NCBI GenBank assembly: GCA_950097015.1
Contig: CATNEN010000039.1
Coordinates: 18,042,001 to 18,106,000, forward strand
DNA length: 64,000 nt
Origin: Macrostomum hystrix
Taxonomy: Eukaryota; Animalia; Platyhelminthes
Direction of reading: 5' to 3'
Shown piece by piece: positions 4,808 through 50,000 of the stretch; the stretch's first letter is position 1; each line of letters opens with the position of its first letter. Position numbers and translations under genes: made by a program. The notes under the pieces are model-generated. The model worked only from the letters and a program-made list of their open reading frames with translations, was not told where the DNA came from and made no database searches.

Positions 4808-5511
4808 AAGATGTAAACTACGAGACGCAGATTACAAGATATAAACTACAAGACGAAGATTACCGGATGTAAACTACGAGACGTAGATTACAGGATATAA
4901 ACTACGAGACGTAGATTACAGGATATAAACTACGAGACGTAGATTACAGGATGTCAACTACACGACGTAGATTACAGGATATAAACTACGAGACGTAGAT
5001 TACAGGATATAAACTACGAGACGTAGATTACAGGATGTCAACTACACGAAGTAGATTACAGGATGTAAACTACGAGACGTAGATTACAGGATATAAACTA
5101 CAACACGTAGATTACAGGATATAAACTACGAGACGTAGATTACAGGATATAAACTACGAGACGTAGATTACAGGATATAAACTACGAGACGTAGATTACA
5201 GGATATAAACTACGAGACGTAGATTACAGGATATAAACTACGAAACGTAGATTACAAGATATAAACTACAAGACGTAGATTACAGGATGTAAACTACAAG
5301 ACGTAGATTACAGGATATAAACTACAAGACGTAGATTAAAGGATATAAACTACGAGACGTAGATTACAGGATATAAACTACGAGACGTAGAATACAGGAT
5401 GTAAACTTCAAGACGTAGATTACAGGATATAAACTACGAGACGTAGATTACAGGATGTCAACTACACGACGTAGACTTCAGGATGTAATCAGGATATAAG
5501 CTACGAGACGT
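4808..5511. repeat. 28-bp minisatellite (GGATATAAACTACGAGACGTAGATTACA)
   Basis: About 25 tandem copies. Confidence 0.95.
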
Positions 5512-5959
5512 AAAAAAAACAAAAAAATTGCCTAATTGAATGTAGTAATTCAATTGCGAAATTTTTGCTGATGCAGTATCGTTCTTATGTTGCTTTTTTC
5601 TAAAATGCCTTTAACAAGCCTTGAGTTAGATTTTTGATTAACAATATATCTCTAGCTTAGAAAAGTTGAGCAAAAATTTATTTAAAGCTCTGTGTCAGTG
5701 GATGCAATCGTTTGTTTCTTGTTATCCTGTACTGTCTGTCTCACGCGCTATGAAAATCACTAATATGTACCACTCTATTTACTAAAATTATACACATATT
5801 TAGCTACAGCTAATTTATTAACACTACAGAATATACACTAAAAAACAATATCACATTCATCTAAGCCCACAATATTCACACATCTCTTCCATTTTGACAA
5901 TAAAAATTCATCTTTCTGCGCTTTTCATTGTGTGAATTATTTTATTTAAATATGTGGTA

Positions 5960-8900
5960 AATACAGAATCCCAACTGATCTGTGTTAGATACAGAATCCC
6001 ATCTGATCTGTGTTAGATACAAAATCCCAACTGATCTGAGTTAGATACAGAATCCCATCTGATCTGTGTTAGATACAGAATCCCATCTGATCTGTGTTAG
6101 ATACAAAATCCCAACTGATCTGAGTTAGATACAGAATCCCATCTGATCTGTGTTAGATACAGAATCCCATCTGATCTGTGTTAGATACAGAATCCAATCT
6201 GATCTGTGTTAGATACAGAATCCCATCTGATCTGTGTTAGATACAAAATCCCAACTGATCTGAGTTAGATACAGAATCCCATCTGATCTGTGTTAGATAC
6301 AGAATCCCATCTGATCTGTGTTAGATACAAAATCCCAACTGATCTGAGTTAGATACAGAATCCCATCTGATCTGTGTTAGATACAGAATCCCATCTGATC
6401 TGTGTTAGATACAGAATCCCATCCGATCTGTGTTAGATACAGAATCCCATCTGATCTGTGTTAGATACAGAATCCCATCTGATCTGTGTTAGATACAGAA
6501 TCCCATCTGATCTGTGTTAGATACAGAATCCCATCTGATCTGTGTTAGATACAGAATCCCAACTGATCTGTGTTAGATACAGAATCCCATCCGATCTGTG
6601 TTAGATACAGAATCCCATCCGATCTGTGTTAGATACAGAATCCAATCTGATCTGTGTTAGATACAGAATCCCAACTGATCTGTGTTAGATACAGAACCCC
6701 ATCTGATCTGTGTTAGATACAGAATCCCAACTGATCTGTGTTAGATACAGAATCCCATCTGATCTGTGTTAGATACAGAATCCCATCTGATCTGTGTTAG
6801 ATACAGAATCCCATCTGATCTGTGTTTGATACAGAATCCCATCTGATCTGTGTTAGATACAGAATCCAATCTGATCTGTGTTAGATACAGAACCCCATCT
6901 GATCTGTGTTAGATACAGAATCCCAACTGATCTGTGTTAGATACAGAATCCAATCTGATCTGTGTTAGATACAGAACCCCATCTGATCTGTGTTAGATAC
7001 AGAATCCCAACTGATCTGTGTTAGATACAGAATCCCATCCGATCTGTGTTAGATACAGAATCCAATCTGATCTGTGTTAGATACAGAATCCCAACTGATC
7101 TGTGTTAGATACAGAACCCCATCTGATCTGTGTTAGATACAGAATCCCAACTGATCTGTGTTAGATACAGAATCCCATCTGATCTGTGTTAGATACAGAA
7201 TCCCATCTGATCTGTGTTAGATACAGAATCCCATCTGATCTGTGTTTGATACAGAATCCCATCTGATCTGTGTTAGATACAGAATCCAATCTGATCTGTG
7301 TTAGATACAGAACCCCATCTGATCTGTGTTAGATACAGAATCCCAACTGATCTGTGTTAGATACAGAATCCCATCTGATCTGTGTTAGATACAGAACCCC
7401 ATCTGATCTGTGTTAGATACAGAATCCCAACTGATCTGTGTTAGATACAGAATCCCATCTGATCTGTGTTAGATACAGAATCCCATCTGATCTGTGTTAG
7501 ATACAGAATCCCATCTGATCTGTGTTTGATACAGAATCCCATCTGATCTGTGTTAGATACAGAATCCAATCTGATCTGTGTTAGATACAGAACCCCATCT
7601 GATCTGTGTTAGATACAGAATCCCAACTGATCTGTGTTAGATACAGAATCCCAACTGATCTGTGTTAGATACAGAATCCCATCCGATCTGTGTTAGATAC
7701 AGAATCCCATATGATCTGTGTTAGATACAGAATCCCATATGATCTGTTTTAGATACAGAATCCCATCTGATCTGTGTTAGATACAGAATCCCATCCGATC
7801 TGTGTTAGATACAGAATCCCAACTGATCTGTGTTAGATACAGAATCCCATCTGATCTGTGTTAGATACAGAATCCCATCTGATCTGTGTTTGATACAGAA
7901 TCCCATCTGATCTGTGTTAGATACAGAATCCAATCTGATCTGTGTTAGATACAGAACCCCATCTGATCTGTGTTAGATACAGAATCCCAACTGATCTGTG
8001 TTAGATACAGAATCCCAACTGATCTGTGTTAGATACAGAATCCCATCCGATCTGTGTTAGATACAGAATCCCATATGATCTGTGTTAGATACAGAATCCC
8101 ATATGATCTGTTTTAGATACAGAATCCCATCTGATCTGTGTTAGATACAGAATCCCATCTGATCTGTGTTAGATACAGAATCCCATCTGATCTGTGTTAG
8201 ATACAGAATCCCAACTGATCTGTGTTAGATACAGAATCCAATCTGATCTGTGTTAGATACAGAACCCCATCTGATCTGTGTTAGATACAGAATCCCAACT
8301 GATCTGTGTTAGATACAGAATCCCATCTGATCTGTGTTTGATACAGAATCCCATCTGATCTGTGTTAGATACAGAATCCAATCTGATCTGTGTTAGATAC
8401 AGAACCCCATCTGATCTGTGTTAGATACAGAATCCCATCTGATCTGTGTTAGATACAGAATCCCATCTGATCTGTGTTTGATACAGAATCCCATCTGATC
8501 TGTGTTAGATACAGAATCCAATCTGATCTGTGTTAGATACAGAACCCCATCTGATCTGTGTTAGATACAGAATCCCAACTGATCTGTGTTAGATACAGAA
8601 TCCCATCTGATCTGTGTTAGATACAGAATCCCAACTGATCTGTGTTAGATACAGAATCCAATCTGATCTGTGTTAGATACAGAACCCCATCTGATCTGTG
8701 TTAGATACAGAATCCCATCTGATCTGTGTTAGATACAGAATCCCAACTGATCTGTGTTAGATACAGAATCCAATCTGATCTGTGTTAGATACAGAATCCC
8801 ATCTGATCTGTGTTAGATACAGAATCCCAACTGATCTGTGTTAGATACAGAATCCCATCTGATCTGTGTTTGATACAGAATCCCATCTGATCTGTGTTAG

Positions 8901-14309: not shown

Positions 14310-14785
14310 GGCCAGGAATCATTTCAGGAATCGTATCAAGAATCGTAGCAAAGAAACGGATCAGGAATCGCATCTCAAGAATCGCCGCAGGAATCGTAGC
14401 ATAATAATCTTAGCAGGAATCGTACCTCAAGAATCGTATCAGGAATCGTATCAGGAATCGCAGCTTTAGAATCACTGCAGGAATCGCAGCTAGAACCACT
14501 GCAGGAATCGCAGCTAGAAACACTGCAGGAACCGTAGCTAGAATCACTGCAGGAATCGTAGCTAGAATCACTGCAGGAATCGTAGCTAGAATCACTGCAG
14601 GAACCGTAGCTAGAATCACTGCAGGAATCGCAGCTAGAATCACACCAGGAATCGTAGCTAGAATCACTCCAGAAATCGTAGCTAGAATCACACCAGGAAT
14701 CGCAGCTAGGATCACAGCAGGAATCGTAGCTAGGAATTCGTATCAGGAATTTTAGCTAGTAATCGTTTCAGGAATTGTAGCTCCA
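14310..14785. repeat. 24-bp minisatellite (GCAGGAATCGTAGCTAGAATCACT), left part, interrupted by a LINE
   Basis: The same unit resumes at 18524-18812; it accounts for the 'ILAAIPAV' ORFs. Confidence 0.9.
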
Positions 14786-17700
14786 ACAACAACAACAACA
14801 ATATACGCCAGGTCTCTCCATGGTCCATGGCGTCAGAAGGCATGTTTCAAGGCCTGGGCGCGAACAAAAGCAGGACCCCCGGCAGTATCCGGGGCGCCGG
14901 CGTCGGCTAGCAGGCAGTCGACGAAACGCCGAGTTCGCGCTTGCAAGCACCCTACCCCGCCGGTAGGGTGCTTGCGTCGTCAGCAGAAGTACCTCTTGCA
15001 CGGGCTGGGGGCAGTACTCCTCGGCTCGGATTAGGTGGCCTGCCAGCTGTAGCCGTCGACGGCGCAACAGCTCGCTTGGACGGGTCAGGCCGGCGCGGCG
15101 ATAGAGTGCCGCGTTGGTGGTCCGATCATCATTGCCGACTTTGAAGGCAGCACGCAGCAGGCCAGCGTGCGCTGCATCGACTAGATGCTCCAGCGTCTCC
15201 GTCAGCGTCCATGTCTCGGCGTTGTAAAGCAGGACGGTCTCGACCACCGCCTGGAACAGCGCCGCCCTCTGACGGTCAGGCGAGGCCACGGAATGCAGGA
15301 CAGCTCGCACCGAGTGGAAGGCTGCCCAGGCAAGACCGCGGCGACGCCGCAGATCCTCGCGGACGTTAGGCACCAGACCGCCAAGGTAGACGAATTGCTG
15401 ACAGCGCGGGAGTTCCGCCACCTGCCCGTCAGCGCCTCGGCAGAAAATTGCGGCCTCGATGTCGCCCGGCACGCAGAGCACGACGGTCTTCTGCGTGTTG
15501 ACCACCAGACCGACGCTCGCCACCGCAGCAACCAGCCTATCCAGCTGGCGTTGGGCGCCCTCGACAGTCGAGGACAGCAGGGCGAGATCGTCGGCGTAGC
15601 CAAGCACGCTGAGCCGCCTCTCTGGTTGGCGTCGACCCACGCGTCGCCGCAGCAGAAAACCGTCGTCATTAGTCGGCATGGCAGTGCGCAGCACCCAGTC
15701 TAGCACCAGAACGAACAGGAACGGCGCCAGCGTGTCCCCTTGAAGCACTCCGGAGGATGTGTCAAAGGGATCCGATAGGCCGTCCGGTGTCATCACGGCA
15801 GCTTTGGTGTCGTGGTACATCGCCATGACGGCGGAAACCAGCTGCTCTGGCACGTTGTAAGCGCGAAGCACCAATGGGAGCGCGGCCCTCAACACCGAGT
15901 CGAAGGCCTTCCTGAAATCTACGAAGATCAGGATCAGGATCGACTGGCGGATGTTCGCTTCCTCGATGACTCGGCGAAGAGCAAGGATCTGCGCCACTGT
16001 GCCGCGTTGGGGTCGGAACCCGTTCTGCTCGGGCCGCAGGTAGGGATCCAACACGGGCTGCAACCGGGATAGCAGCATCCGGTTAAACAGCTTCGCAGCG
16101 CAGGACTGCAGGCAGATGCCTCGATGCTCCTCTAGCTTTGTGGTGCCCGGCTTCTTCGGAATCGCGACGATGTGGGCCATGGTCCATTCGTTGGGCGCCG
16201 CCTCACCGGAAAGCACGCGATTCATCACACTGGCGACCTCGCCAGCCACACAGTGGAGCCGCAGTGCTTCGATGGGTACCTCGTCTGGACCCAGCGCTTT
16301 GCCGCCCGATGACTTTTGGGCCAGCAGTACAACATCATCCTTGGTGACCGGTGCCACGTTGAAACTCTCTGCCGACGGTAACGGCGTCTCCGGCGGCAGT
16401 CTCAGGTTGTTGGGTTGTGGGGGTGGCGGCGCGTTGACAGTGGCGGCGAAGAACTCGCGCAGCTCGTTGCGGCGCTCTTCAGCAGTGTCGCCAGCCAAGT
16501 TCAGTTGTAGGCGCCGCTTTCGCCCCGTCAGAGCATTGATGGCGGACCAGGCCACTCGACCTTTAGCGTCGGGCCCAGCGGCTGACACGGCCTTGATGGC
16601 GTCATCCACAGCGGCTTGCTGCCGTTGCAGGTAGACGACTGCTAGGGCCTCCTCAGCCTCGCGTGTAGGTCGCCTGCTCAGACGGAGCTTCTCCAGTTCC
16701 TCCCTCGCTTGCTGGATCACGGGGTCACTCTGCCAGACCGGCAGCCCACGCTGGGCCGGCTGCATCAGTGGGACCGCTTGCTCCGCTGCGGCTGGAACAG
16801 CAGCGCTGATCTCCGCGTACTCGGCACTTCCACACCTGCCGCCCAGCGCGGTGGTGAATGCGGTAGCGAAGCGGCGGCGCGTGTCAGCGTCCTTAAGCGC
16901 ACGGTAGTAGCGCCGCGGTGGCCGCTTAGGCGGGCGATAGAGCGGATCGCGTAGGTTGAGGTCGCAGACGAGGAGCTTGTGATCGGACCGCAGGACTAGC
17001 GGCGTGATAGCGCGGCAATTGGCAACGCGGCCTTGCTCACGAGAGCGCACAAGCACGTGGTCGAGCTGTGCTAGCCGTCGCGTAGCATTTCGGCGGCGCG
17101 CATTCCGCCTTCTCCGCTTGCAGCCCACAAAGGTTGCGAGCCTGCTCGGTGGTTTGCGGAAACGTGTGTTGGCCGACACCATGTCCTGCCTTTCCAGGAA
17201 GTCCTCCAGTGCTTCGGTATTGTTGTTCTCGCGTGGCGTAAAAAACAGCGACCGCTTGGACCTCCGTGCAACTGCGTTCAGGTCTCCAAGAACGACCACA
17301 GTGTCTCGTTGTGCCATCTCCTCCACCAGCGCCGAGAGTTGCTCGAAGAAGCCTTGAGCCTCATCAGGGCGAGTGGAAGGGGGCGTGTACACACAGAATA
17401 GACGGGCGTTCCGGCCGCGGAGCCGGACGTCGACACGAAGCACACGGTCAGACAAGGAGACACAGCGAAATCTCTGCTGTAGCCTCGGCCCGATCAGCGC
17501 TCCAACTCCTCCACGGCCTCGTTGGTCCGCCGTTGAATAGTAGAAGGTCCAGCCGGCACCCAGGTCTTCACAGTGAAGGCCTGGTTCCGCCCTGATGGAC
17601 ACTTCCTGCAGAGAGATGATGTCGCAGCCCAGGTCTAGAGCTAGCTTCGCCAGCGCTCCTCTCCGCCAGTTGGCCTTGAGTGTGCGGCAGTTCAGCGTCC

Positions 17701-17962
17701 CGACCCGAAGCTTGCCTTCTGATAGAGCTGGGGCTCGATGCTGTTGAGCCTCACGGTCCCCGGCGCCACCCGGAAGATCCGAAGGACCAGCAGTGGTAGC
17801 ACTTCGACGGGTAGCGCCACGTAGCCGACCTCGCCGATTTCGCTCACGCCGGCGTTCAACGCGCCGGCGCATGCTTCGCTGCCCTCGCTTGGTCTTGCCG
17901 CTGTTGGCCGCCGCAGCAGCTAAGCGCGGCTCACCGACTTCACCACGTGGAGGTCGCGGCAT
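14768..17962 (-). CDS. AP endonuclease-reverse transcriptase polyprotein; C-terminus frameshifted by a 10-bp insertion
   Basis: APE motifs GTLNCRTL, SLQEV, GDLNA, LDHVLV, SDH; RT motifs IPKK, QNGFR, FVDFRKAFDSV, GVLQGDTLAPFLF, YADD, YLG; RTE-type tail LLYNAETW. Confidence 0.95.
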   Translation of the reverse strand: MPRPPRGEVGEPRLAAAAANSGKTKRGQRSMRRRVERRRERNRRGRLRGATRRSATTAGPSDLPGGAGDREAQQHRAPALSEGKLRVGTLNCRTLKANWRRGALAKLALDLGCDIISLQEVSIRAEPGLHCEDLGAGWTFYYSTADQRGRGGVGALIGPRLQQRFRCVSLSDRVLRVDVRLRGRNARLFCVYTPPSTRPDEAQGFFEQLSALVEEMAQRDTVVVLGDLNAVARRSKRSLFFTPRENNNTEALEDFLERQDMVSANTRFRKPPSRLATFVGCKRRRRNARRRNATRRLAQLDHVLVRSREQGRVANCRAITPLVLRSDHKLLVCDLNLRDPLYRPPKRPPRRYYRALKDADTRRRFATAFTTALGGRCGSAEYAEISAAVPAAAEQAVPLMQPAQRGLPVWQSDPVIQQAREELEKLRLSRRPTREAEEALAVVYLQRQQAAVDDAIKAVSAAGPDAKGRVAWSAINALTGRKRRLQLNLAGDTAEERRNELREFFAATVNAPPPPQPNNLRLPPETPLPSAESFNVAPVTKDDVVLLAQKSSGGKALGPDEVPIEALRLHCVAGEVASVMNRVLSGEAAPNEWTMAHIVAIPKKPGTTKLEEHRGICLQSCAAKLFNRMLLSRLQPVLDPYLRPEQNGFRPQRGTVAQILALRRVIEEANIRQSILILIFVDFRKAFDSVLRAALPLVLRAYNVPEQLVSAVMAMYHDTKAAVMTPDGLSDPFDTSSGVLQGDTLAPFLFVLVLDWVLRTAMPTNDDGFLLRRRVGRRQPERRLSVLGYADDLALLSSTVEGAQRQLDRLVAAVASVGLVVNTQKTVVLCVPGDIEAAIFCRGADGQVAELPRCQQFVYLGGLVPNVREDLRRRRGLAWAAFHSVRAVLHSVASPDRQRAALFQAVVETVLLYNAETWTLTETLEHLVDAAHAGLLRAAFKVGNDDRTTNAALYRRAGLTRPSELLRRRRLQLAGHLIRAEEYCPQPVQEVLLLTTQAPYRRGRVLASANSAFRRLPASRRRRPGYCRGSCFCSRPGLETCLLTPWTMERPGVYCCCCCWSYNS

Positions 17963-19275: not shown

Positions 19276-21090
19276 TGTAGCTGACTTGCTACAAATGTTG
19301 CTGTTAAATTTAAGAGTCGGCAAAAGCTTGGGCTTGTTTATTTAGTTTTGTCGTGGGGTTACATTTAAGTCTTAACCGGGCAACTGTACCTATCGATAAC
19401 AAGGGTCATAGACAAATTAGCGGTAAGGGGGGAAATAAAAGTACCATTTGAATCTTTAAATATTAAGAGTTAAAAGAAAGAAGTGAATTTGCTGCTACAA
19501 GATACTCCCCCCACCCAAAACGGAGTTTATGCAAAGGTTTTGATTGTCGTTATGAAACAGTTAGAAAACGATGCTTTTCAGTTAGGTTAATAATGGTTCA
19601 GTTGCGTAAAACAGTTTAACAGATGGTTCTGTGGAAAAACGAACGTGGGAAGCGGTTTTAGCACGTATGTTTGCTGCCGGTGGGTTTTCCGGTGTTACAG
19701 TAGTTGCTGGTGCTTTGCTAATTGGTACCGGTGCTGGGAGTGTAGCTGGTTTCACTCGATCGATAGACACTACAGAAGGCTTGCCGTTGATTTCCAATGT
19801 AAATGTCGTTTCGTGTCTCTCCAACACTGCATAGGGTCCCTGGTAGGGTGCTTCTAGGGGACGTCGAACTCGATCTAGTCGCAACCAGACGTGGGTGCAT
19901 GCAGCCAAGTCTGCTGGCAGATGAATTCTTACCTCGCGCGTTCGTGGTTGGCGATACGGAAAAAAAAGTTGGTGCAGTCTTGTGGAAAGTTCCTTGACAG
20001 AGGAGGTGTCGGCAACTACAGGTGGGACTAATGGTTGTTCACCGGTAACGATGGAGAATGGCGATGCACCTGTCTCGTCTGCAAAAATGCGCATTCCGAG
20101 AAGCACGATGGGTAGCTGCTGCAGCCAGTTCTTGCCACGTGCTTTCAGCCCGGACTTTAATGTTCGGTGGGTTCGCTCGACGATGCCATTTGCCCTCGGA
20201 TTATAGGCTGAAGTGCGGATGTGATGGATTCCGAGCAGTGTCGCCAGGTTTCGCATGAGCTCCGCGCGGAACTGCGCGCCTTGATCGGTCACCAGCGTCA
20301 ATGGTGGGCCAAACCGAGAAATCCAGGATTCTAGGAAGGCGCACGCGACTGAAGTGGCGGTGATGTCAATGAGAGGGGCAGCTTCAATCCAACGTGAATA
20401 TGCATCGACCATTGTGAGCAAGTAGCGAGGTCTGGGACTAACGTCGGTCGACTCTGGGGGTGGCAGTGGTCCGACTAAATCGATATGGACCGTCGTGAAG
20501 CGTTGAGAGGGTGCTGGAAGCTGTTGCAACGGGCGTTGGACGTGACGACCTGTCTTGCACTGCTGGCACTGTTGACATTCGGCTACCCACCTTTGGATGT
20601 CGTTAGCCATACCTAGCCAGAAAAAACGATAAACGATGAGTCGTTGCGTGGCTTTGCGGCCAGGATGTGCGAATGCATGCAGCGAGTCAAAAACAGCGCG
20701 TCGGAGAGTCCTAGGGATGACGGGACGTGGGTTTGTCTGCGAGATTTCGCATCGCAGTGGGAAGTCCTTGATTCCAATGTCGAAGTTGCTGAAACGGCCT
20801 GTCTGGGGTTCATCCTCCGGGTTTTCCTTCTGTGCTCGTGCAACGGCTGGCAGGTCCACACATTGAGGAAGGTCAGACAGCAGTCGAATTGTGGTTGGTG
20901 GCGGGTTCTGGGATGGGTAAACCGGTCGTGATAGCGTGTCGGCTACGATGTTGTCCTTGCCGGAAATGTGGATGATGTCGCTCACAAACTCCGTGATGAC
21001 GGATAGCTGGCGTTGTTGTCGATCGGAAAACCGTTCTTTCTTATTTCTAAACGCTCCGCTGATGGGCTTGTGGTCGCAGAACCACATTAG
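19276..21090 (-). mobile_element. 5'-truncated Ty3/Gypsy LTR retrotransposon: end of RNase H, integrase, PPT and 3' LTR
   Basis: Integrase ORF, then polypurine tract GGGTGGGGGGAG (~19505-19516), then a putative 224-bp LTR 19499-19276 with TGTAGC...GCTACA termini and an AATAAA on the minus strand. Confidence 0.8.
19582..21087 (-). pseudogene. Gypsy pol fragment (RNase H C-terminus, HHCC zinc finger, DDE integrase, GPY motif)
   Basis: DHKP...HISGKDNIVADTLSR; H-AFA-H...CQQC; VHIDLVGP, VTDQG, NGIVER; PYQGPY. No gag, protease or RT upstream. Confidence 0.92.
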
Positions 21091-21178
21091 GTTCTGAGTC
21101 TCTCTGACGCCCGAGTCTCACCTCTCTCGTAATCTAGAAACACTGCTTAGGCAATACATTGTTGCAGTCAAATTAAAA

Positions 21179-24100
21179 ATGCCAACCAATTTCTCAGTTG
21201 GAGCATTGCTGAGGACTGTTTGCATCTTCCTGATGCAAGCCGCTGCAGGAATTCGCGGCCGCAGGAGCGCTTCGTCAGCGGACCATGCGGAGTTCCTGCT
21301 TGCTGTTCTGCTAGGAGATGTACGAACCATAGACCACTGTCTGAGAAGGGGTTTGAAGTTAAACGCTTTGTATGCGTTTGATGGAATAATGATTTCTCCT
21401 CTCAATATTGCAATCACTATCGGGCGATTGGAATCTGTACATTTCCTGCTCAATGCTGGAGCTGATGTTGACCTCCAAAATCTGAATGGAGAATCGGCCA
21501 TCCACTTTGCATCACAAAAAGGGCATCAGCAAGTCGTTGAGTCACTCATCAAAGCAAAAGCCGACGTTAACCTTCAAAAAAAAAATGGCGTCTCACCTCT
21601 CTACGTTGCATCAGCATTTGGGCATCAGCAAGTCGTTGAGTCACTCATCAAAGCACAAGCCAACGTTAATCTTCAAGCTAAAAATGGCGTCTCACCTCTC
21701 TACGTTGCATCACAAAATGGGCATCAGCAAGTCGTTGAGTCACTCATCAAAGCACAAGCCGACGTTAACCTTCAAGCTAAAAATGGCGTCTCACCTCTCT
21801 ACGTTGCATCACAAAATGGGCATCAGCAAGTCGTTGAGTCACTCATCAAAGCACAAGCCGACGTTAACCTTCAAGAAATCGATGGGTGCTCACCTCTCTT
21901 CATTGCATCACAAGAAGGGCATCAGCAAGTCGTTGAGTCACTCATCAAAGCTGACGCCGGCGTCAACATTCAAGAGAAGGTAAAAGGCATCTCACCTCTC
22001 TTCATTGCATCACAAAATGGCCATCAGCAAGTCGTTGAGTCACTCATCAAAGCACAAGCCGACGTTAATCTTCAAGAGAAGGTCCGTGGCTTCTCACCTC
22101 TCATCGTTGCATCACACGATGGGCATCAGCGAGTCGTTGAATTGCTCATCAAAGCACAAGCCGACGTCAATCTTCAAGAAATCGATGGGTGCTCACCTCT
22201 CTACATCGCATCACAAAATGGGCATCAGGATGTCGTTGAGTCACTCATCAAAGCACAAGCCAACGTTAATATTCAAGCTAAAAATGGCGTCTCACCTCTC
22301 TACGTTGCATCACAAAATGGGCATCAGCAAATCGTTGAGTCACTCATCAAAGCACAAGCCAACGTTAATCTTCAAACTAAAAATGGCGACTCACCTCTCT
22401 ACGTTGCATCAGCATTTGGGCATCAGCAAGTCGTGGAGTCACTCATCAAAGCTCACGCCCGCGTCAACATTCAAGAGAAGGTAAAAGGCTCCTCACCTCT
22501 CTTCATTGCATCACAAAATGGGCATCAACAAGTCGTTGAGTCACTCATCAAAGCTCACGCCCGCGTCAACATTCAAGAGAAGGTAAAAGGCTCCTCACCT
22601 CTCTTCATTGCATCACAAAATGGGCATCAACAAGTCGTTGAGTCACTCATCAAAGCAAAAGCCGACGTCAATCTTGCGCAGAAAAATGGCACCTCACCTC
22701 TTCATATTGCATCACAAAATGGGCATCAACAAGTCGTTCAGTCACTCATCAAAGCAAAAGCCGACGTCAATCTTGCGCAGAAAAAAGGCGCCTCACCTCT
22801 CTACGTTGCATCAGCATTTGGGCATCAGCAAGTCGTTGAGTCACTCATCAAAGCTCACGCCCGCGTCAACATTCAAGAGAAGGTAAAAGGCTCCTCACCT
22901 CTCTTCATTGCATCACAAAATGGGCATCAACAAGTCGTTGAGTCACTCATCAAAGCACAAGCCGACGTTAATCTTCAAACTAAAGATGGCGTCTCACCTC
23001 TCTACATTGCATCACAAAAAGGGCATCAGCAAGTCGTTGATGCACTCATCAGAGCTGGAGCCGAAGTCATAGATCCTCATCTTGATCTGTAAGTTTGTGT
23101 TTTGTGAAAATTTGCTTTCATATTTTTTACATAACTTGCTCAACGTTCAGCATGTAGAGTCCTAATTTGGAATCATTTTAAATTGGAAATTGAGCATGGC
23201 ATTTGACTTCTCCACGATCGTAAGCACACTTTTATAATTGTCAGGAATCCTAGCGCATTTATGGTCAGAAATTACCTTTAAACCTGGATCTTTTTTCTTT
23301 TGCTTTATGAGCAACCTGTCTTTATAATGGAGTCCATTAAACCGTAAGGACGAGTTAATTAAGAAGAGTTCTGACGCGGTTATCACTAAAGATTTTATTC
23401 GTTTAAGCTTCCTTGTTCTCTGCTGTCTACGAGCTCGTATTTAGCTCAATCGAACATTCTAGAACTCCCTCGAAAGTGGATCTTGTTATAATCTTCGGAA
23501 GTGAGTTGAGCAATTCCCGGGTTATATTAGTGCAAAAGCGATCAGTACCAATTGTAGTTTGACTGATGACACTCTCTGATGTTGGACAAGACTCACATTG
23601 GATCTCTACAATCCATTTACCTGTTGGCCAAGGCCTATACGTGACCGGCGACCAAAATTCTGCTTCGTGAATTGTGTTCTAGAGCATTGTTGTTGTTCTA
23701 CATGCACCTATATTTAACATAGTTTATTTCTTCAAAGAAAATCAAACTTGCTTTCGATTCCAGAGCTCACTTAAAGCCACCCGCTGAGCATCCAAGTCTC
23801 ACCGACTCACAGCTGAGTGAGCTGCTGCACTCAAAACTCAGTCTTTCTGGCTTTGTGGACACCAGAGCTGCCTTGCAGAGCGCTGCTGCTGACGTTTTTG
23901 AAGAGATCCTGAGGAAGAGGCTGAATAGTAAAGTATTTGTCATAGGCAGCTTTTCGGAAGGCTGGGGCAACAGTCTTACGACCCTGGACGGTAAAACCGA
24001 CATCAAGTCCGATATTGACATCATGATGCTTATCCCTGGCCGTCTCTACCACTTAAGAGACCTGTGCGAGTGCAGTACGTCAAGTGAGAAGTTGGAGTAC

Positions 24101-25993
24101 AAAAATGGTCACGTGATTTGTTCTGGATTTGGTGAGTAAAACATACGAGCGTAATACTATTTTACACATTTTCAGATCTTAGTTGTCAGTAAGAAATATA
24201 CTTTTGCTTGGGTCTAAAACATAAATTTTAGTACTCAAATCAATTCTTTACCACTCAGTAAACTACCGGTCCTAGTTTTGACGCTGTAAGGACGAAGGGA
24301 AGATTCTGTACAGGATTTAGGACAGACGTGCGACTTGCATGCTAACTTTATCGATAAATTTGGATAACATACTTGATAAATATACGATTTGGAATGCACA
24401 AATCTGCACTTATGTGAAGTCTACTTGCATTATGCATTCTAAAACAGAGTCAGCATCATCTGCTTGTTTGGCTATACCTGGGCTGTAGGCAGAAGGCTTC
24501 GTTTAATTGTTCGTATACACACAGATTTAGTTGATTGCCCAGTCTCAAAGTCTGTGATCTTTATGAGAAGGAGAAAAATATTTATTTGTCAACAAGCCCT
24601 TTATTGTCGTCTAACATCAGGAATTGCCGAACTGAATTGCAGCATCGAACCCCGCTCAGCCGATACCCGGATTCCCTGGAGGCCGGCAGTGGACCTTGTC
24701 TCCGCCTGCCTTCTGTGCAGCTACCCGCCTCTCGCACCGCTCCAATCGGACCGAACATCAACCTCCAATATCCCACAATCCGTGCTGGAGTCTCTCCGGC
24801 GAGATCTCGTCTCCACCTCATCGCCCTGTCACCTGGTACACGCAGCCTGTCCTGGTCGAGCAGGCAAAGAGCTCCGTGTAAGCACCAGCTTTCTGGAGAA
24901 ACGGCTGCTGAGAAGCCTCAACAGCCTGCAAGGCCAGCTGTTCGTCACACTCAAGTACCTGGTGAAGAAGGTCATCTGTCCGAGTGACGGGGCTATTCAA
25001 GGTCTGAAGCCGTATCACGCGAAGACTATCTTGTTCCGCATGTTGGAGCAGACACCGGCGGAGCAGTGGAAGCCGGAGAATCTCGTGAGCCTTTTGAGAC
25101 AATCCCTGGAGATGCTGCTGGACAGCGTGAAGAGCAGCTGCAGACCTGACAATACCGATGGTCGAATCATGGAGCACTTCTTTCTGATGGATGCCTCACT
25201 GTACCTCAAGGGAGTTGATCGACAAAAGTCGATTGATACACTCAGCAAACTCGCCGACAAATTAAGAGCTGAGATTGAGCGACTACCTGAGATTCTGGTG
25301 CAGTTTGCGGACAGCCTCAAGCCCGTGAGTAAGTCGGGCAGATTCTATTTCCACCCGTTCCAAATCCTGCCAGATCTAAGACCTAGTTCCGTGCCACAGT
25401 ATAGTAACAAAATAGAATATCATGATATCTACCACGTCGTCAGAGAAAGTGTTCTGCGACTGTCCGATCGGGATTGCAGCCAGCAAGAATCTCTCATGGA
25501 GCTGATTGGCAGACTGCCAAACTGTGCCTTCACGACACGGGAGGCTCTGAGAGCGCTGGCCTGCCTCAAGTTCGGTGACAGAGAGACTGCTGAGCAGATT
25601 TTGAACCGGAGCATGGGGCATAGGGTGAGCAGAGGCATCGATATGATTGCTTCGATGCCGAAAGTCTATGTAACGACAGATTTCTTGTGGCGGCATCTGG
25701 AACGTCACAACTCCGCATGGAAGTTCTGCTTCGGGTTTGACGGGCGGATACAAATCAGCTTCGTGACTGGAGGACTTCTAAAGCATTTTTTTCCCAAAAA
25801 GTTAGCTGTTGGCGATTTCTTCATCAACTTCGAAGCCGTGCTGTGGGCTCTGCGCCTCGAACTCTGGACGCACAGCACTGCAAGAGCTCAGGAATGGATC
25901 CGACAAGAGAGTTATCAGGAGGACCCTGATGAGGAGAAGCTGGAGGAGCTGTGGGAGCTGGAGCAAGCGCGTATACGCCAACGTTCATTCTGA
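21179..25993 (+). CDS. Ankyrin-repeat / Mab-21 (cGAS-like receptor, cGLR) nucleotidyltransferase fusion protein, ~1216 aa, 3 exons
   Basis: Exons 21179..23088 (CT|GTAAGT, phase 2), 23764..24131 (CAG|A ... G|GTGAG, phase 1) and 24621..25993 (CAG|GA) splice in frame. Exon 1 has 17 ANK repeats plus an N-cap. Exon 2 has IGSFSEG-x-SDIDIM; exon 3 has AVDLV...YP, HLV, RVSTSFLEKRLL, LKPYHAKTILF, QW..ENL, HFF, the Mab-21/cGAS fold signature. Confidence 0.85.
21485..23060 (+). repeat. coding tandem array of 99/102-bp ankyrin units with high nucleotide identity
   Basis: Near-invariant GGCATCAGCAAGTCGTTGAGTCACTCATCAAAGC core in 16 successive units. Confidence 0.97.
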
Positions 25994-32534: not shown

Positions 32535-35500
32535 TGTTGTGTATTGACTGACTGAATGCTAATTTACGCATACTGCCACTATGAGTAGTGCAGTGAGGAA
32601 GCTAGTAGTTTCTAGAACCTTCTGTAGCCAGAATATTCTAGAACCTTCTATAGTCCGTGTTTTCTAGAACTTTCGATTTAACATATCAGCTACCTATAAA
32701 TATACGGACACAAAGCTATCACAAAAAGGATAACTTCTCAATTTGGAATCTGCCAACAAATCCGTTGTTCCCTTCGTTCACTACATAACAACTGGCGACG
32801 AGGATGGCCCTCAACGTTAGCCCACCGACACCGTACCTGCCGGCAAGCGGACCTCCAGCAGTTCCATGGAATCGATGGCTAGACGCTTTCGATATCTATT
32901 GCCAAGCGGCGCAGATCTGGACTGACCGGCCGGCAGAGGGCGAAGCTCCAACAGAGGAAGCTACGCGACTGGCAACGAGGAGCCGCAACATGCTGCTGCA
33001 CCTGCTCGGTTTCGAAGGGCAGCGGATTGCCAGGGCACGCAACGCGATTGTCGACGGCCACACCTTCTGGCAAACCCGCGACATGCTGACGACTGTGTTT
33101 GGCGACCGGCCAAACGTGATGTTGGCGCGTCACCGATTCCGGGAGCGACATCAGCTGCCCGGAGAGGACGCAGTCACGTTTGTCGCAGCACTACGCGAGC
33201 TGTCAGCCACCTGCAACTACGGAGCAATGGCTGACGAAATGATCCGCGACCAGCTGGCCCAGAAAACCAGCAGCAGCCGGATTCGTGAGCGCCTGCTGAC
33301 TGAGGACGCCGCCAGGCTGACACTGGACCAAGCCATCGTGATCGCGACGACTATCGAGGAGGCAGCGGCAGGCAGCAAGGCGATGGCAGCAGCCGGCTCT
33401 TCAGGAAATGTCCAGGCTGTGCAGGAGGCCAGACCCCGAGGTCACCATGGCGCTCCGTCCAAGAAGAAGCCAGGGCAGCAAGCCGGAGGATCCTGCCAGC
33501 GATGCGGCCGCAGCCATGATGGCAAAGCCCAATGTCCCGCGCACGGCAAGAAGTGCAACAACTGCGGCAAACTGAATCACTTCAGCCGATGCTGCCGCAA
33601 TAAGACAATGCAGGTCAGCGCGGAAGAGACAATCTACGCAGTCCACGGCAACAACGAGGTCCGCGCAGACCTTCAGCTCGGCAGCATCCGAAAGACCGTC
33701 AGCCTGATGGTCGACTGCGGTGCCAAGGTGTCTCTGCTGAACGAGGCCACGGCACGGGGCTTGGGCGACATTCGCCTAAGAACGTCGTCGATGAGGCTAC
33801 GAGCCTACGGCGGGAAGCTGATCGCCCTAGCTGGGATCGCAACAGTGCCCGTCAAGCACCACAGCCGTGAGCTCCAACACGACTTCTACGTCACGAGGTC
33901 TGGCGAGAACCTCATCGGCCGCGACCTGATGGAGAAGCTAGGCTTCCGCGTGCAACTGCAGCCGCCAGCTGAGATCGGTGCCGAGATCGCCAGCGTAGAC
34001 ATCGAGCGAGAGTTCCCAACGGTCTTCAGCGGCTCGATCGGTCTCTGCAAAGGCGCAGTGCACAAACCGAGGATTAACGCAGCGGTGCCACCAGTGCAGC
34101 AGCCGCTCCGTCGACTTCCGCTCGCTAAGCAGCAACAAGTCGGCGAGGAGCTGGACCGTCTGGAGGCCATGGGAATCATCGAACGGGTGAATTCCAGCCC
34201 ATGGATCTCCAACTTGGTTGTCGCTAACAAGAAGGACGGAAATATTCGAGTCTGCATTGACGTGCGAGAGCCGAACAAGTCGCTCGTCATCGACCGGCAC
34301 CCGATGCCGCAGCTGGACGAGATCTCGGCCAAGATCAAAGCGGCCGGAGGCAGCGTGTTCTCCAAGATCGACCTTAAGGCAGGATACATGCAGATGAAGC
34401 TGCACGAGTCATCACGTGACCTGACAGCATTCATTACTCACCAGGGTCTGTATCGCTACTGCAGGGTGCCGTTCGGCCTTGCTTCTGCACCGGCGGCATT
34501 CCAGAGGATGCTGGACGACCTGGTGTCTGATCTGCAGGGTGTTGAGCACATCCTGGACGACTTCATCGTCTTCGGAGCAACTGAAGCCGAGCACGACTCG
34601 AGGCTGCGAGCACTGCTGAAGCGATTGGAGGACGCCGGTCTCACTGCCAACAAGGACAAGTGCCAGCTGCGGAGGACTGAGATTGAGTTCTTTGGCTTCA
34701 TCTTCTCAGCCAACGGCATGCGACCGTCTGAGAGTCAGACCAACGGCCAGACCGAGAGACTCAACAGGACGCTGATGGACAGCATCCGAGCGGCCAGGGC
34801 GGCGAACATTCCGATGCAGGACGCGCTGCTGCAGTTCCTTGAGGCTTACCGCAGCACTCCACACGCCCTGACTGGGAAGAGCCCGGCTGAGCTGATGCTG
34901 GGCAGGCGATGGCGCACAGCCCTGTCTCTGCTGTCACCGTCTAAGGACAACGCGGTTGCGCATACCGAGATGGCCCAGCGAATCCAAGAGCGCCAGCAGC
35001 GGACGGCAGCCTACACGGACCAGCGGCGAAGAGCGCGACCGCCGGCACTGCGCGCCGGCGACTGGGTTCGGGTGCGGCGTCCAATACGACGGGGCAAGCT
35101 CGGAACGCGGCTCTCGGCGCCGCTTCGGATCGTCAAAACGATGGGCGCTGCTTGCCGACTGACCGACGGCAGCACCTGGAATCAGCAGGCACTCGTACCA
35201 ACATCGATGCGCCTGAGCCCCGAGACACCGGTGCCTGACGAGCTCGACCCGCTCATCGACTTTCAAGGACAGCACACGGTTCCGGACGATGGAGGCGGAG
35301 ATCCCTTGCCTGCACCGGATCCAGCACAGGGACTAGCGACCCCGCCGGTACGACGATCCGGTCGGCCGAGGCGACCTGTGCAGCGTTATGGCTTCTGACT
35401 GACTGATTTTGCGGAGAGGGGGAAGATGTTGTGTATTGACTGACTGAATGCTAATTTACGCATACTGCCACTATGAGTAGTGCAGTGAGGAAGCTAGTAG

Positions 35501-44000: not shown

Positions 44001-47000
44001 CCTGGACGACTGGGACCCGGTGAGTGACATTTAGATAATGAATTTCGGATATTTAGCATTGCGTAATAGTTCACAATATTTTATTTTCACTTGTTTGTTT
44101 AAAATTTTTTGCAGGCAAGCTGTTTGTCTGAGTCGGACTGGTACACTTTTCTGCAGGCATTCTACAGGGTGGCGCAGTGAGTGAACTCCTGATTAAATAG
44201 AGAAAGAGACAGGGAAGTAGGCAGTAAAAAGTAGGCAGGGAGAAGTAGATTGCTAGAAGTAGATAGTTAGGGTTAGAAGTAGACAGAAAGAATTAGACCA
44301 CGAGAAGAAGACAGCTAGAAGTAGACAACAGGGAGAAGTAGACAACAGGGAGAAGTAGACAACAGGGAGAAGTAGACAACAGGGAGAAGTAGACAACAGG
44401 GAGAAGTAGACAACAGGGAGAAGTAGACAACAGGGAGAAGTAGACAACAGGGAGAAGTAGACAACAGGGAGAAGTAGACAACAGGGAGAAGTAGACAACA
44501 GGGAGAAGTAGACAACAGGGAGAAGTAGACAACAGGGAGAAGTAGACAACAGGGAGAAGTAGACAACAGGGAGAAGTAGACAACAGGGAGAAGTAGACAA
44601 CAGGGAGAAGTAGACAACAGGGAGAAGTAGACAACAGGGAGAAGTAGACAACAGGGAGAAGTAGACAACAGGGAGAAGTAGACAACAGGGAGAAGTAGAC
44701 AACAGGGAGAAGTAGACAACAGGGAGAAGTAGACAACAGGGAGAAGTAGACAACAGGGAGAAGTAGACAACAGGGAGAAGTAGACAACAGGGAGAAGTAG
44801 ACAACAGGGAGAAGTAGACAACAGGGAGAAGTAGACAACAGGGAGAAGTAGACAACAGGGAGAAGTAGACAACAGGGAGAAGTAGACAACAGGGAGAAGT
44901 AGACAACAGGGAGAAGTAGACAACAGGGAGAAGTAGACAACAGGGAGAAGTAGACAACAGGGAGAAGTAGACAACAGGGAGAAGTAGACAACAGGGAGAA
45001 GTAGACAACAGGGAGAAGTAGACAACAGGGAGAAGTAGACAACAGGGAGAAGTAGACAACAGGGAGAAGTAGACAACAGGGAGAAGTAGACAACAGGGAG
45101 AAGTAGACAACAGGGAGAAGTAGACAACAGGGAGAAGTAGACAACAGGGAGAAGTAGACAACAGGGAGAAGTATACAACAGGGAGAAGTAGACAACAGGG
45201 AGAAGTAGACAACAGGGAGAAGTAGACAACAGGGAGAAGTAGACAACAGGGAGAAGTAGACAACAGGGAGAAGTAGACAACAGGGAGAAGTAGACAACAG
45301 GGAGAAGTAGACAACAGGGAGAAGTAGACAACAGGGAGAAGTAGACAACAGGGAGAAGTAGACAACAGGGAGAAGTAGACAACAGGGAGAAGTAGACAAC
45401 AGGGAGAAGTAGACAACAGGGAGAAGTAGACAACAGGGAGACATGCAGTACACATGTCAACCCGGGTCCCAATCCAACCGCACCTTCAGTTACGGCGCCC
45501 GCATTCGGGATTCGGACTCGCTAAAGTCGCGCTGTCGCGAGCTGTGCGCCGCCCTCCGCTCCGAATATCCCCAATTCGACATCGACGGCTATCGCAACGC
45601 GTGGATTGTGAAGCCGGGCGCCAAGTCGCGTGGCCGCGGCATCTTCTGCGTTCGGACGCTGGAATCGGTGATGGAGCTGGTTAGGCAGCCGTCTGCTGTC
45701 GGCGTCAGTGCCAACAAGCTGGTTGTGCAAAAGTACATCGAACGACCGCTATTAGTGCATCGAACTAAATTTGACATTCGTCAGTGGTTTGTGGTGACGG
45801 ACTTCAATCCGCTGACAATTTGGTGGTACAAGGACTGCTATGTGAGATTCTGCTCGCAACACTTCACACTGAACGATTTCAACGAGTGAGTTGCGAGACA
45901 AACTTGAAATTGTAATTTTTTAAATCTTTTTTTTTTCAGAAAAAGCTCGTTAGCTTGTTAGCTGGGGAGAGAAGGCTTGGGAGCTTGTCTTAATTTACCC
46001 TAAAATGGTAAATTATAGTATATACATTTTATTATCCTGAGAAGCGTTTTGTCTTCTAGGAAAGTTATTTCATAAAACTTGTGAAAACAACAAATTTAAT
46101 TATTAGAAGTCCTTTTTCTTGAAATCAATTGGTTGGTTTCTAAGAAAGTAGTTGATTTCTTAGAAAGTAGATGATTTCTTAGAAAGTAGATGAATTCTTA
46201 GAAAGTATATGATTTCTAGAAAGTATATGATTTCTTAGAAAATAGTTGCTTACTCAGAAAGTAGTTGATTTCTTAGAAAGGGGTTTGTTGTGTAATGATC
46301 GATGCTGGCTAGCCGATGTGCAGTCTTTCTCTTTCTCTCTCAGTGCACCTGCCCCCCAGTCCCCCATTGACGCGTACAATGTACATTGCTCACTGCACTT
46401 GACTAAACAATAATATATATATCGGCTCTCTGCCCATCGCTGGCTTTAAGCGTTTCGTAGCTCGCACACACTCGCCTTGACTTCTAACATAACATGGCGT
46501 CGCAAGTCTAAACTTTCTAGCAAGCCAGCATGGATGGATTGAGGCCGCCAGAGCCCATGATTTTTGACACCAATAGGGCAGACAACTGGAGGCGATGGAT
46601 CAGTGCATTTGATTTCTACATGAAAGCTACGAAGAGGACTGAAGAAAGTGAAGAAGTGAAGATCGCTGTTCTCCTGACCGCGCTTGGATCCGATGGACAG
46701 GACGTATTCTCCACGTTTCCTGCAGACCAAGTAGCAACGTACGCAGCTGTAAAGAGTGCGTTCCAAGAGTACTGCGAGCCTCTGTCGAATGAGACCTTTG
46801 AGCGCTACCAGCTTCGAACAAGAGTGCAAGGAGAAGCTGAGGACTTCGACCAATTCGTCGGCTCACTTCGCCAGCTCATCAAGCGATGCAACTACAGCGA
46901 GCCAGCGAACAAGGAGACCATCGAGAACAGCGTCATTCGAGATCAGATCGTCATCGGTGCGAACGACCCAGCTCTGAGGGAGAGGCTTCTCCGCGAGACA

Positions 47001-50000
47001 AAGCTGACGCTGGACCGCGCCATCCAGATGGGTCGAGCGTCGGAGACTTCGAAGCGGCAGGCTCGGACCCTGGCCACAGCGCAGATCAGCCGAGCAACGC
47101 CTGCACCCGCGCCAGCGTCCGTCGAGGCAGTTCAAGGCCGAACCAGCCGGTCGCAGCCCGCCAGCAATGCCAAGTCGGCTCGCAGCTGCGGCTTCTGCGG
47201 ACAGCAGCATGAGCGGCGCAAGTGCCCGGCATTCGGTAAGACCTGCAATAACTGTGGTCGCGCAAACCATTTCTCGTCCGTGTGCCGCTCAGCTAAGAAG
47301 GTCAACGAGCTGGTGGAGAACACCGAGACCGAGTCCGCAGGTGATGGCCCGGCTGCAGCAATCATGACCGTGGAGCAGCCAGGTGCTCGAACCAAGGCGC
47401 AAACCGACAGCTCGGCGATGATGGTGTGCCTGACTGTCACGGACTCTGGAAGAAGGCTGCAGTTCAAGGTGGACACCGGTGCGGACGTCAACGTGATCCC
47501 TCTGAAACGGCTGATCCAGCTCGCCCCTGCAGCATCGATTGAGCCGACATCTTGGACTCTGACAACGTACAACAAGCAGCTGCTGGACGTGGTCGGCATC
47601 ACGTACTTGACTGTGTCTTCGCCCTGCCGGAAGAATGCCCGACTGCAGTTTGTTGTTGTCGGCGAGAACTCCACGCCCATCATCGGCTGGAAGTCAGCGA
47701 TTGAGGAGCTGCAGCTGGTCAAGAAGCTGTTCTCGTTGCAGCAGAGTCTAAGCAGCATGAGCAAGGTGAGCAAGCAGCAGTTATCGGAACTGAACTCCAG
47801 CCAGTTAAAGGCCAGCTTCCCAGAAGTATTCAACGGCGTTGGATGCATGAAGCAGCCATACACCATTCAACTGTCGGACAACGCAGTGCCTAAAGTGCAG
47901 CCTCCTCGCAAGGTGCCATTTGCTGCGTATCAACCTCTGAAGTGCGAGCTGGAGAGACTGGAGAAGGAAGGAACGATCGCGCGAGTCGACGAACCGACGC
48001 AGTGGGTCTCCAATGTGGCCATCGTGTGGAAGAAGGACGGCTCGATGCGACTGTGTCTAGATCCGACCTACCTGAACAGGTTCATCATCAGAGAGTACCA
48101 CCCGATCCCCACCGCCGAGGAAGTTCGAGCTGCGACTGCTGGAGCCATCCTGTACAGCTCATTCGATGCGAACGAGAGCTTTCACCAACTAAAACTCGAT
48201 GATGAAAGCTCCTTCCTGACCACGTTCCACACCCCGTTCGGCCGATATCGCTGGAAACGAGTTCCATACGGTCTCTCATCCATTCCCGAGGTCTTCCAGA
48301 AGAGAATGGAAGAAAACGTCACAAACAACGTGAGAAACTCTAAGAACTTCTTTGACGACATCATCGTGTGGGGAAGAACAGTCGAGGAGCACGACCAAGC
48401 TGTGCGAGAGCTCCTGGAGCAGTGCAAGCGTGCCAAGGTGACACTGAACCCACAGAAGATGCGAGTCGGTGTCCAAGAGCTCAACTACCTAGGCGATGTG
48501 CTCAGCTCGGAAGGGTTGCGAGCAGATCCAATGAAGGTCAAAGCCATCAAAGAAATGATCCGGCCGAATGATGTTGAAGGTCTCACTTCGAAGAAGGAGC
48601 AGCTAAGGCGATTTCTCGGCTGTGTGACGTACCTGGCCAAGTTTTGTCCTCATCTTTCCGCTACTGCAGAGCCGCTTAGACACCTGCTCAAGAAAGACGT
48701 CATTTGGAGCTGGACGCATCAGCACGACGAGGCGTACGACTCGATCATCACGGAGCTGTGTTCTAACAGGGTTTTGGCTACATTTGACGTCAGCAAGCCA
48801 GTCACCGTGTCTGTGGATGCCAGCAAGAGCGGCATCGGTGCTGTGCTACTCCAAGAGGACCGTCCGGTTGAGTTCGCTTCATCAGCCATGACTAAAGCTC
48901 AGCAGGCATACGCGCAGATTGAGAAGGAGCTCCTGGCTATTGTGTACGGCTGCAAGAAATTTCACCGCTACCTCTGGGGCCGCACTGTCAATGTCCAGAG
49001 TGACCATAAGCCACTGGAGTCCATCTTAAAGAAGCAGCTCTGTGACACCACGCCGCGCATCCAGCGCTTGCTGCTGCAGCTGCAGCCCTACGACATTCGT
49101 GTGAAGTACACACCAGGAAAGGAGCTGTACGTTGCAGACACGCTAAGCCGAGCTCACGGAAAGACGGACAGCCTGACGCTTCTGCTGGAGGAAGCTTTGG
49201 ACGGACAAGTGCTAGCTGTGGAGCGATGCTTCAGTGGAGACCGCGAGATTCTGACAATGATCAAGAAGGCCACGGCTGCAGACCAGACGAGCCAGCGTCT
49301 GCAGGAGGTCATTCAAGCCGGATGGCCCGAGCATCGAAACCGACAACCTGACGATTTGAAAGCATTTTGGGATCTTCGCCATGATCTGACTTTCGTCTCA
49401 GGACTCCTATGCCTGAAGGACCGCATCTACGTGCCAGCCGGCAGCGCCAGAAGCTCGATCCTAAGAATTTTGCACGCTGGACACCCTGGAATCGTCAAGA
49501 TGGACCTGAAAGCCAAAGACTATTTTTACTGGCCAGGAATGCGCACCTGCATCGAGCGAACTGTCAGCCAGTGCGAGGCCTGCCAGCGTAACATGAAGGC
49601 CCAGTCAAAGGAGACTTTGATGATCGTTGAAATGCCCGAGTTTCCGTTCCAAGTCTGCTCGACCGACTTGTTCGAGTTCCGTGGCGCTGCGCACCTGGTG
49701 TACGTAGACGCCTACAGCCACTGGATGAGCATCACCCGCCTGCGGTCGACAACAAGCCTGGCAGTAGTTCAGGTGCTCCAAGACCATTTCCAGAACTTTG
49801 GAGTGCCAGAGAAGCTCATCAGTGACAACGGGCCGCAGTTCACCGCAGGAGAGTTCCGCCAGTTCATGAACAGATTTCAAGTGGAGCACCGGACATCGAG
49901 TCCGGCCTACCCGCAGTCCAACGGCAAAGCAGAGCGATATGTGCAGACTGCCAAGAATATGATGAAGAAGTGCCAGGAGACTGGACAGAGCCTGGCACTG

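Follow-up and report, generated by a model that had tools for sequence, protein, structure and literature searches.

A predicted ankyrin-repeat cGAS-like receptor of Macrostomum hystrix and the gene radiation to which it belongs

Introduction

The window analysed here is a stretch of 64,000 nucleotides from the flatworm Macrostomum hystrix (GenBank assembly GCA_950097015.1, contig CATNEN010000039.1, positions 18,042,001 to 18,106,000 of the forward strand), and positions within it are counted from its first letter. Between 21179 and 25993 it carries three open reading frames (ORFs). The question that this locus raises is whether they are the exons of a single gene that joins an array of ankyrin (ANK) repeats to a cGAS-like receptor (cGLR), and what such a protein would sense and signal.

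About 3,000 cGLRs have been described, of which 87% are single-domain proteins and some are fused to tetratricopeptide (TPR) or ankyrin repeats (Li et al. 2023, PMC9980059). In most animals the number of cGLRs is 1-5, and in some bivalves it exceeds 200 (Li et al. 2023). Nematodes and most platyhelminths were reported to have no cGLR other than Mab21-like proteins (Li et al. 2023, 10.1101/2023.02.22.529553). Most animal cGLRs are orphan enzymes, and many show no activity in vitro, the presumed reason being that they respond to ligands other than nucleic acids (Li et al. 2023). In the literature collection that was searched, no paper links Macrostomum with cGAS or cGLRs in its main text.

Results

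Three ORFs form one predicted gene

The three ORFs were read at 21179-23092 (637 amino acids, aa), 23855-24139 (94 aa) and 24464-25993 (509 aa), the same lengths as in a preliminary description of the locus. That description had joined them through canonical, phase-matched junctions at 23088/23764 and 24131/24621 into a product of about 1216 residues. Both junctions proved to be GT-AG with the split codons in frame (CT+A, Leu; G+GA, Gly), and the codon total of the predicted three-exon model came to the expected length (636+1+122+1+456 = 1216). Exon 1 (21179..23088, plus strand, 636 codons and 2 bases) begins with the ATG at 21179 and encodes a 68-residue leader followed by the ankyrin array. 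It ends in phase 2 at 23088, where direct reading of the sequence gives the donor GTAAGT from 23089. Intron 1 (23089..23763, plus strand, 675 base pairs (bp), GTAAGT...AG) has its acceptor AG at 23762-23763. Exon 2 (23764..24131, plus strand), which ends in phase 1, encodes an N-terminal spine helix together with the first half of the nucleotidyltransferase (NTase) core. The core is split by intron 2 (24132..24620, plus strand, 489 bp, GTGAGT...AG), with the donor at 24132 and the acceptor AG at 24619-24620. The first part of exon 3 (24621..25294, plus strand) encodes the strand that bears the third catalytic Asp, followed by the Mab-21 helical lobe, and the second part (25295..25993, plus strand) a family-specific C-terminal tail of 232 residues, with the stop codon at 25991-25993. 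An alternative acceptor 22 bases downstream (24642/24643, AG at 24641-24642) was rejected because it is out of phase. The stop codon TAA of the first ORF is made by the donor itself, so that retention of intron 1 would yield an ANK-only protein of 637 residues. An AG at 21166-21167, following a TTGTTGC tract and 11 bases before the ATG, could be a splice or trans-splice acceptor that leaves a very short 5' untranslated region.

Macrostomum lignano proteins that contain both ANK repeats and Mab-21_C are collinear with the three exons of the window gene, and three M. lignano proteins (P0031, P0055 and P0069) give an ungapped alignment over the exon 2/3 junction. The same layout of an ANK exon, an exon of ~120 aa and an exon of ~490 aa was found in 13/13 fully fetched paralogous loci, and intron 2 was kept in every paralogue read. 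A layout that recurs in all of these loci and in annotated M. lignano proteins is not due to chance. We conclude that the locus is an intact gene of three predicted exons, in which ANK repeats are joined to a cGAS-like enzyme.

The catalytic domain belongs to the cGAS/Mab-21 family

The active-site motif of cGLRs consists of a GS loop and [DE]h[DE]h X50-90 h[DE]h (Li et al. 2023, PMC9980059), and the window protein contains the complete pattern. IGS (23942-23950, with the GS codons at 23945-23950) is followed 20 residues later by DIDI (24011-24022, DID at 24011-24019), the arrangement that had been described earlier. The third acidic residue is, as proposed, the Asp of AVDLV (24692-24694), which lies in RPAVDLV at the start of exon 3. 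Its distance had been put at about 58 aa; counted across the junction, it stands 62 residues past the second Asp of DID, a spacing within the range of 50-90.

In the database searches the window exons were used one by one and not as a joined protein. Exon 3 matched PF20266 (Mab-21_C) at 24941-25222 with 33.6 bits against a cut-off of 24.1, and this region includes the lobe LKPYHAKTILF...W...HFF of the preliminary description. The Pfam comparison suggested there was positive for this half of the domain only: on exon 2, PF03281, the NTase half of Pfam Mab-21, had no match, and Pfam gave a weak generic NTP_transf_2 hit alone (14 bits). Profile alignment with hhalign matched exon 3 to canonical Mab-21 proteins (99.0%, E 3.7e-18), and exon 2 alone gave a short match over GS...SDID (58.6%, E 9.6e-5). 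When a profile of the Macrostomum family was used, the alignment to the canonical proteins extended over 298 columns (99.8%, E 1.2e-27) and placed GS, SDxD and the third Asp in the same columns in both. Against PDB sequences, the best match of the family profile was cGAS-like receptor 1 (E 6.6e-4), followed by cGAS; single-exon sequence searches of PDB chains gave no match for exon 3 and only a chance SH3 match for exon 2.

A HMMER search with exon 3 against 1.8 billion representatives returned 272 matches. About 70 of these were strong and came from long proteins (900-1575 aa, few longer), and all of the strong matches that were looked up (16/16) were from M. lignano. An ANK array and Mab-21_C occurred in one chain in 7/7 Pfam-scanned M. 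lignano proteins, and such proteins are present in two annotation sets. The weak end of the match list was made up of proteins with true Pfam Mab-21 and Mab-21_C domains. On these sequence comparisons, the assignment of the predicted protein to the cGAS/Mab-21 (cGLR) family is sound.

Two other identities were considered and rejected. A developmental Mab-21 protein of the MAB21L1/2 type was set aside on the complete active site and the missing PF03281 match. A 2'-5'-oligoadenylate synthetase (OAS) was rejected as well: the window exons had no OAS Pfam match, and no OAS chain was present in the 50 best Foldseek or VIA rows, all of which were cGAS, cGLR or MB21D2.

Between the DID dyad and the third Asp, exon 2 also contains an H-x5-C-x-C-x13-G-H pattern (YHLRDLCEC...NGH, 24035-24114). 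Both His residues are invariant in the family alignment and the Cys residues are kept in the nearer subfamily only. The pattern could be a putative metal site.

The window gene is one of about 150 paralogues

The search of the genome for paralogues that had been proposed was carried out with both catalytic exons. Exon 3 had at least 94 matches in the 220-Mb assembly, nearly all of them open, a count that is a lower bound with 93/175 candidates scored. Exon 2 had 149 matches, with a stop in one only; one of them lies on contig 39 at 20412619-20412954. Tandem clusters were found on contig 1 at 12.7-12.8 Mb, on contig 3 at 10-11.9 Mb and on contig 18. As judged from these predicted copies, the window gene belongs to a birth-and-death radiation, missed in the preliminary description, of about 150 genes that share one layout.

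The active site is widely kept in this family. Among the paralogues of the same genome (19 distinct loci), GS was present in 18/18 loci with exon 2 and DxD in 17/18, and the third Asp was kept in 16/16 loci where the alignment reaches it. The 48 cluster representatives from M. lignano, some of which are only 26-35% identical to the M. lignano protein P0011, had GS in 47/48, the two dyad Asps in 44/48 and 46/48, and the third Asp in 42/46. Retention of the active site in ~85-95% of relatives is the pattern expected of working enzymes. A sister paralogue on contig 2 (G000:C2:6150759-6151127; L015:6760-7128, plus strand), 62-64% identical to the window gene in exon 3, has DIG instead of DID and may be a catalytically impaired copy.

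A quick maximum-likelihood tree was made from the exon-3 regions of 20 M. hystrix and 44 M. lignano sequences. The two species interleave in this tree, with at least 7 label changes forced by well-supported branches, and species-specific tandem clades are present as well. The window gene pairs with the DIG paralogue (Shimodaira-Hasegawa-like approximate likelihood ratio test, SH-aLRT, 98) on branches that are fairly long, and no M. lignano sequence lies close to it. The idea that the copies are carried by transposons was rejected: they are 35-64% identical, are arranged as tandem clusters and are mixed with M. lignano lineages in the tree. Besides the family, the assembly contains a single canonical Mab-21 gene (G000:C24:4853213-4853761, minus strand), which matches PF03281 over the full model length with 128.7 bits and is probably the developmental MAB21L-type orthologue.

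Two further features of the paralogues were observed. In a paralogue on contig 1 (G000:C1:367603-369987; L023:3603-5987, plus strand), the third exon is an open frame of 795 residues with an ankyrin-like end, so that ANK repeats may be present at either end of this copy. Several paralogues have long low-complexity tandem arrays within or next to their introns and upstream regions (L017:3054-4770; L018:4746-9000; L019:2700-3900 and 5066-6022). All six frames of these arrays are open, and their peptide periods include ITGLGCS and EEKRR.

The ankyrin array varies at its binding face

Exon 1 was described earlier as encoding 17 ANK repeats, and this number was obtained twice, with 17 stretches in the Pfam Ank match (E 5e-128) and 17 in an independent count. 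The repeats extend over 21383..23080 (plus strand) at a spacing of 33/34 residues, as laid out in a repeat table with per-position entropy. They are almost identical to one another, and their variation is concentrated at positions 1, 2, 4, 8, 12, 13, 26, 28 and 33. Positions 1, 2, 4, 12 and 13 correspond to the classical binding-face positions of ankyrin repeats, as in designed ankyrin repeat proteins. At the DNA level, Tandem Repeats Finder reported an array at 21507..23069 (plus strand) with a 99 bp period, 15.5 copies and 84% match, and super-periods of 300 and 402 bp that correspond to cassette duplications. The N-terminal ANK exons of the paralogues are 328-1014 aa long, so the number of repeats varies among family members.

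The 68-residue leader before the array (21179-21382; FSVGALLRTVCIFLMQAAAG) has a hydrophobic or amphipathic start. The start motif M..F..AL..I..LMQ is common to paralogues. The leader may cap the ANK array as a helix or anchor the protein in a membrane.

Predicted fold and C-terminal tail

Because intron 2 splits the NTase core of the window gene, the modelling was done on P0011, a contiguous homologue from M. lignano with 50-62% identity to window exons 2 and 3. The model had a mean confidence (predicted local distance difference test, pLDDT) of 92.4 and a predicted template modelling score (pTM) of 0.91. A comparison of the structure with cGAS and cGLR1 had been recommended, and the top 50 Foldseek matches of the P0011 model were all cGAS or the oyster protein Cv-cGLR1. 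The modelled fold is closest to DNA-bound cGAS structures. Judged on this close homologue, the predicted fold is that of a bilobed cGAS/Mab-21 nucleotidyltransferase.

The tail was modelled from the window's own sequence (25295-25990) and gave a helical domain with a small sheet (pLDDT 88). On this confident model the tail of ~230 residues, which we treat as family-specific, is helical, in agreement with the helical tail proposed earlier.

A STING-like candidate receptor

One locus of the genome, on contig 2 (G000:C2:9104529-9104996; L001:1000-2010, minus strand), weakly resembles STING. All of the weak PDB matches of its frame were STING (30/30, E 0.06-1.5), over the first helix of the ligand-binding domain only (GEAFAWNFAFTFLRLILPKL). 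By eye, the frame has an R-x-aromatic motif and a D-W-A-S-P motif, apparently at the places where human STING has R238-V-Y240 and E-Y-A-T-P. About 170 further residues follow the STING-like ligand-binding domain; the exons just upstream of it showed no Pfam domain and no obvious transmembrane segment. An Atlas search with the candidate gave no usable match. We regard this divergent gene as a lead and not a finding, a candidate for the receptor of a signal made by the ANK-cGLR proteins.

Surroundings of the gene

The window gene sits in a transposon-rich stretch. Immediately upstream, on the minus strand, an ORF at 19582-21087 encodes the end of an RNase H domain and an integrase (Integrase_H2C2 and rve), as in the pol of a long terminal repeat (LTR) element. 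The reverse-transcriptase part is missing further upstream on that strand, so the element is truncated at the 5' end of the gene. Other retroelement ORFs lie at 14768-17962 (minus strand; LINE-like, with Exo_endo_phos and RVT_1), 32804-35398 (plus strand; RVT_1) and 46530-50642 (plus strand; a full Gypsy-like pol with RVT_1, RNase H and integrase).

Discussion

The best joint explanation of these observations is that the window gene encodes a ligand-gated ANK-cGLR from a radiation of about 150 genes, to which we give a probability of roughly 0.6. The protein would rest inactive until its variable ANK face bound a non-self or danger ligand, perhaps with nucleic acid also bound by the catalytic domain, which is mildly basic. 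Ligand binding would then release the enzyme to make a cyclic or linear oligonucleotide signal. This signal would be read by a downstream receptor, for which the divergent STING-like gene on another contig is the candidate.

Several observations weigh against this explanation. The PF03281 half of the Mab-21 domain was not matched on exon 2, and the fold was modelled on the homologue P0011 rather than on the window's own joined protein. The truncated retrotransposon ends 92 bp upstream of the ATG and could disturb expression. For the candidate receptor, the Pfam STING_LBD score was 25 bits against a cut-off of 27, and a word search found no homologues of it. The remaining point comes from the relatives of the window gene. 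In the screen with double-stranded DNA (dsDNA) and poly I:C of Li et al. 2023, the table contains five NTase-only constructs from M. lignano (numbers 89-93), whose sequences are plainly of the window gene's family. The 15 selected active enzymes were numbered separately, and the note column is empty for constructs 89-93 (Li et al. 2023). These five were therefore not marked as selected active enzymes, which is not equal to being proven inactive, and nucleic-acid-driven activity in the family is at best undemonstrated.

The main rival of the ligand-gated ANK-cGLR is an active cGLR whose catalytic domain itself senses nucleic acid and whose ANK array serves for scaffolding, localisation or oligomerisation, or autoinhibition. 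A basic catalytic domain would agree with this, as nucleic-acid-sensing cGLRs have an isoelectric point (pI) above 8.5 (Li et al. 2023) and the corresponding values are 8.94 for P0011 residues 1-322 and 8.85 for the catalytic part of window exon 3, and so would the nearness of the modelled fold to DNA-bound cGAS structures. Exon 2 is acidic, however (pI 5.93), and the net charge of the two catalytic pieces of the window protein together is only about +2. The M. lignano constructs, which lacked the ANK array and were given dsDNA and poly I:C, were not marked active, and the variation of the ANK arrays at the binding face and in copy number looks like the diversification of a recognition surface. 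On balance we consider nucleic acid as the ligand unlikely, at about a third of the weight of the preferred explanation.

A Mab-21-type adaptor that works through protein-protein contacts and makes no nucleotide messenger, as is reported for MAB21L1, MiD49/51 or the shrimp Mab21 proteins, is less likely than nucleic-acid sensing, and we hold it to be improbable. An adaptor would fit a protein in which both the ANK array and the helical tail are large modules for protein interaction, and it would fit the absence of the M. lignano constructs from the selected active enzymes; a 2026 paper reports crustacean Mab21 proteins that act outside nucleic-acid sensing (PMC12928593). Against an adaptor, GS, DxD and the third Asp are kept in ~85-95% of members across lineages that are only 26-35% identical, and such retention across distant lineages is hard to explain without catalysis. 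Many cGLRs, moreover, appear to be inactive in vitro because the right ligand is lacking (Li et al. 2023). Less likely still, and in our judgement very improbable, is that the fused model is wrong or the copy dead, with the ANK ORF translated alone or the gene a silent recent duplicate beside transposons: the TAA formed by the donor GTAAGT, the truncated LTR-element pol 92 bp upstream and the other retroelements in the window would fit this, whereas the three open exons with canonical in-phase splice sites, the layout shared by all examined paralogues and by annotated M. lignano proteins, and the intact catalytic residues of a gene whose sister paralogue has DIG all argue against it.

The ligand-gated ANK-cGLR can be extended to a more specific and quite tentative proposal, namely NLR-like recognition on a cGLR chassis. 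About 150 rapidly reshuffled ANK arrays would each directly bind a different pathogen or danger protein and switch on a nucleotide messenger, which would be read by the STING-like protein or by the family's own helical tail. If this proposal were true, these proteins would be the first protein-ligand-gated cGLRs and the first diversified repeat-based repertoire that feeds cyclic-nucleotide signalling, in a phylum thought to be largely without cGLR immunity.

Three features make the family interesting: so large a radiation in a flatworm, ANK arrays that have diversified, and a tail that is unexplained. Its catalytic site is conserved while the attached array varies at the binding face and in repeat number, and with about 150 genes it is a natural place to seek non-nucleic-acid ligands of cGLRs and new nucleotide signals. 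With this family, the view that cGLR immunity is lacking in most flatworms also needs qualification. Macrostomum lignano is a laboratory model with RNA interference and transgenesis. As M. lignano carries the family, the question is experimentally approachable.

The statement of the preliminary description that repeat-domain fusions of cGLRs are reported and uncharacterised agrees with the published catalogue, in which no ligand, product or function is given for any ANK-fused member (Li et al. 2023). The domain table lists M. lignano PAA accessions with Ank_2 (Li et al. 2023, PMC9980059), and the ANK-fused list also holds three Stylophora pistillata fusions (Li et al. 2023). Like the window protein, these ANK-fused cGLRs have the ANK repeats N-terminal to an NTase whose active site is complete. 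Those from M. lignano are direct homologues, with 50-60% identity in exon 3 and the same GSF.EGWGNSL...SDID motif. The window copy differs from them in coming from another species and in having no close M. lignano orthologue in the tree. Since M. lignano homologues with Ank are already in the catalogue, the novelty of the architecture had been overrated, and the window copy adds a member and its context rather than a new principle.

Vertebrate cGAS (mouse 4k98, human 7ftr) is ~20% identical in sequence to the window protein, which has 17 ANK repeats added before the shared domain and a helical tail of 230 residues after it; at the position of the cGAS zinc thumb no sequence match was detectable. 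Crassostrea virginica Cv-cGLR1 (8gjw) and the bivalve-type cGLRs with C-terminal TPR extensions are without an ANK array, and no alignment was obtained between their C-terminal regions and the tail of the Macrostomum proteins, the hhalign match ending at profile column 339. Human MB21D2 (7lt1), an orphan cGLR, is a single-domain protein encoded by a single-copy gene in vertebrates. A different kind of likeness is found in the NLR-type immune receptors of fungi and invertebrates, which carry highly similar, hypervariable ANK, TPR or WD40 arrays. With these receptors the window family shares near-identical repeats, variation at the binding face, variation in repeat number and clustered birth-and-death families. 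Their signalling module is a NACHT or NB-ARC ATPase, whereas that of the window family is a predicted nucleotidyltransferase, and the likeness is one of working principle and not of membership.

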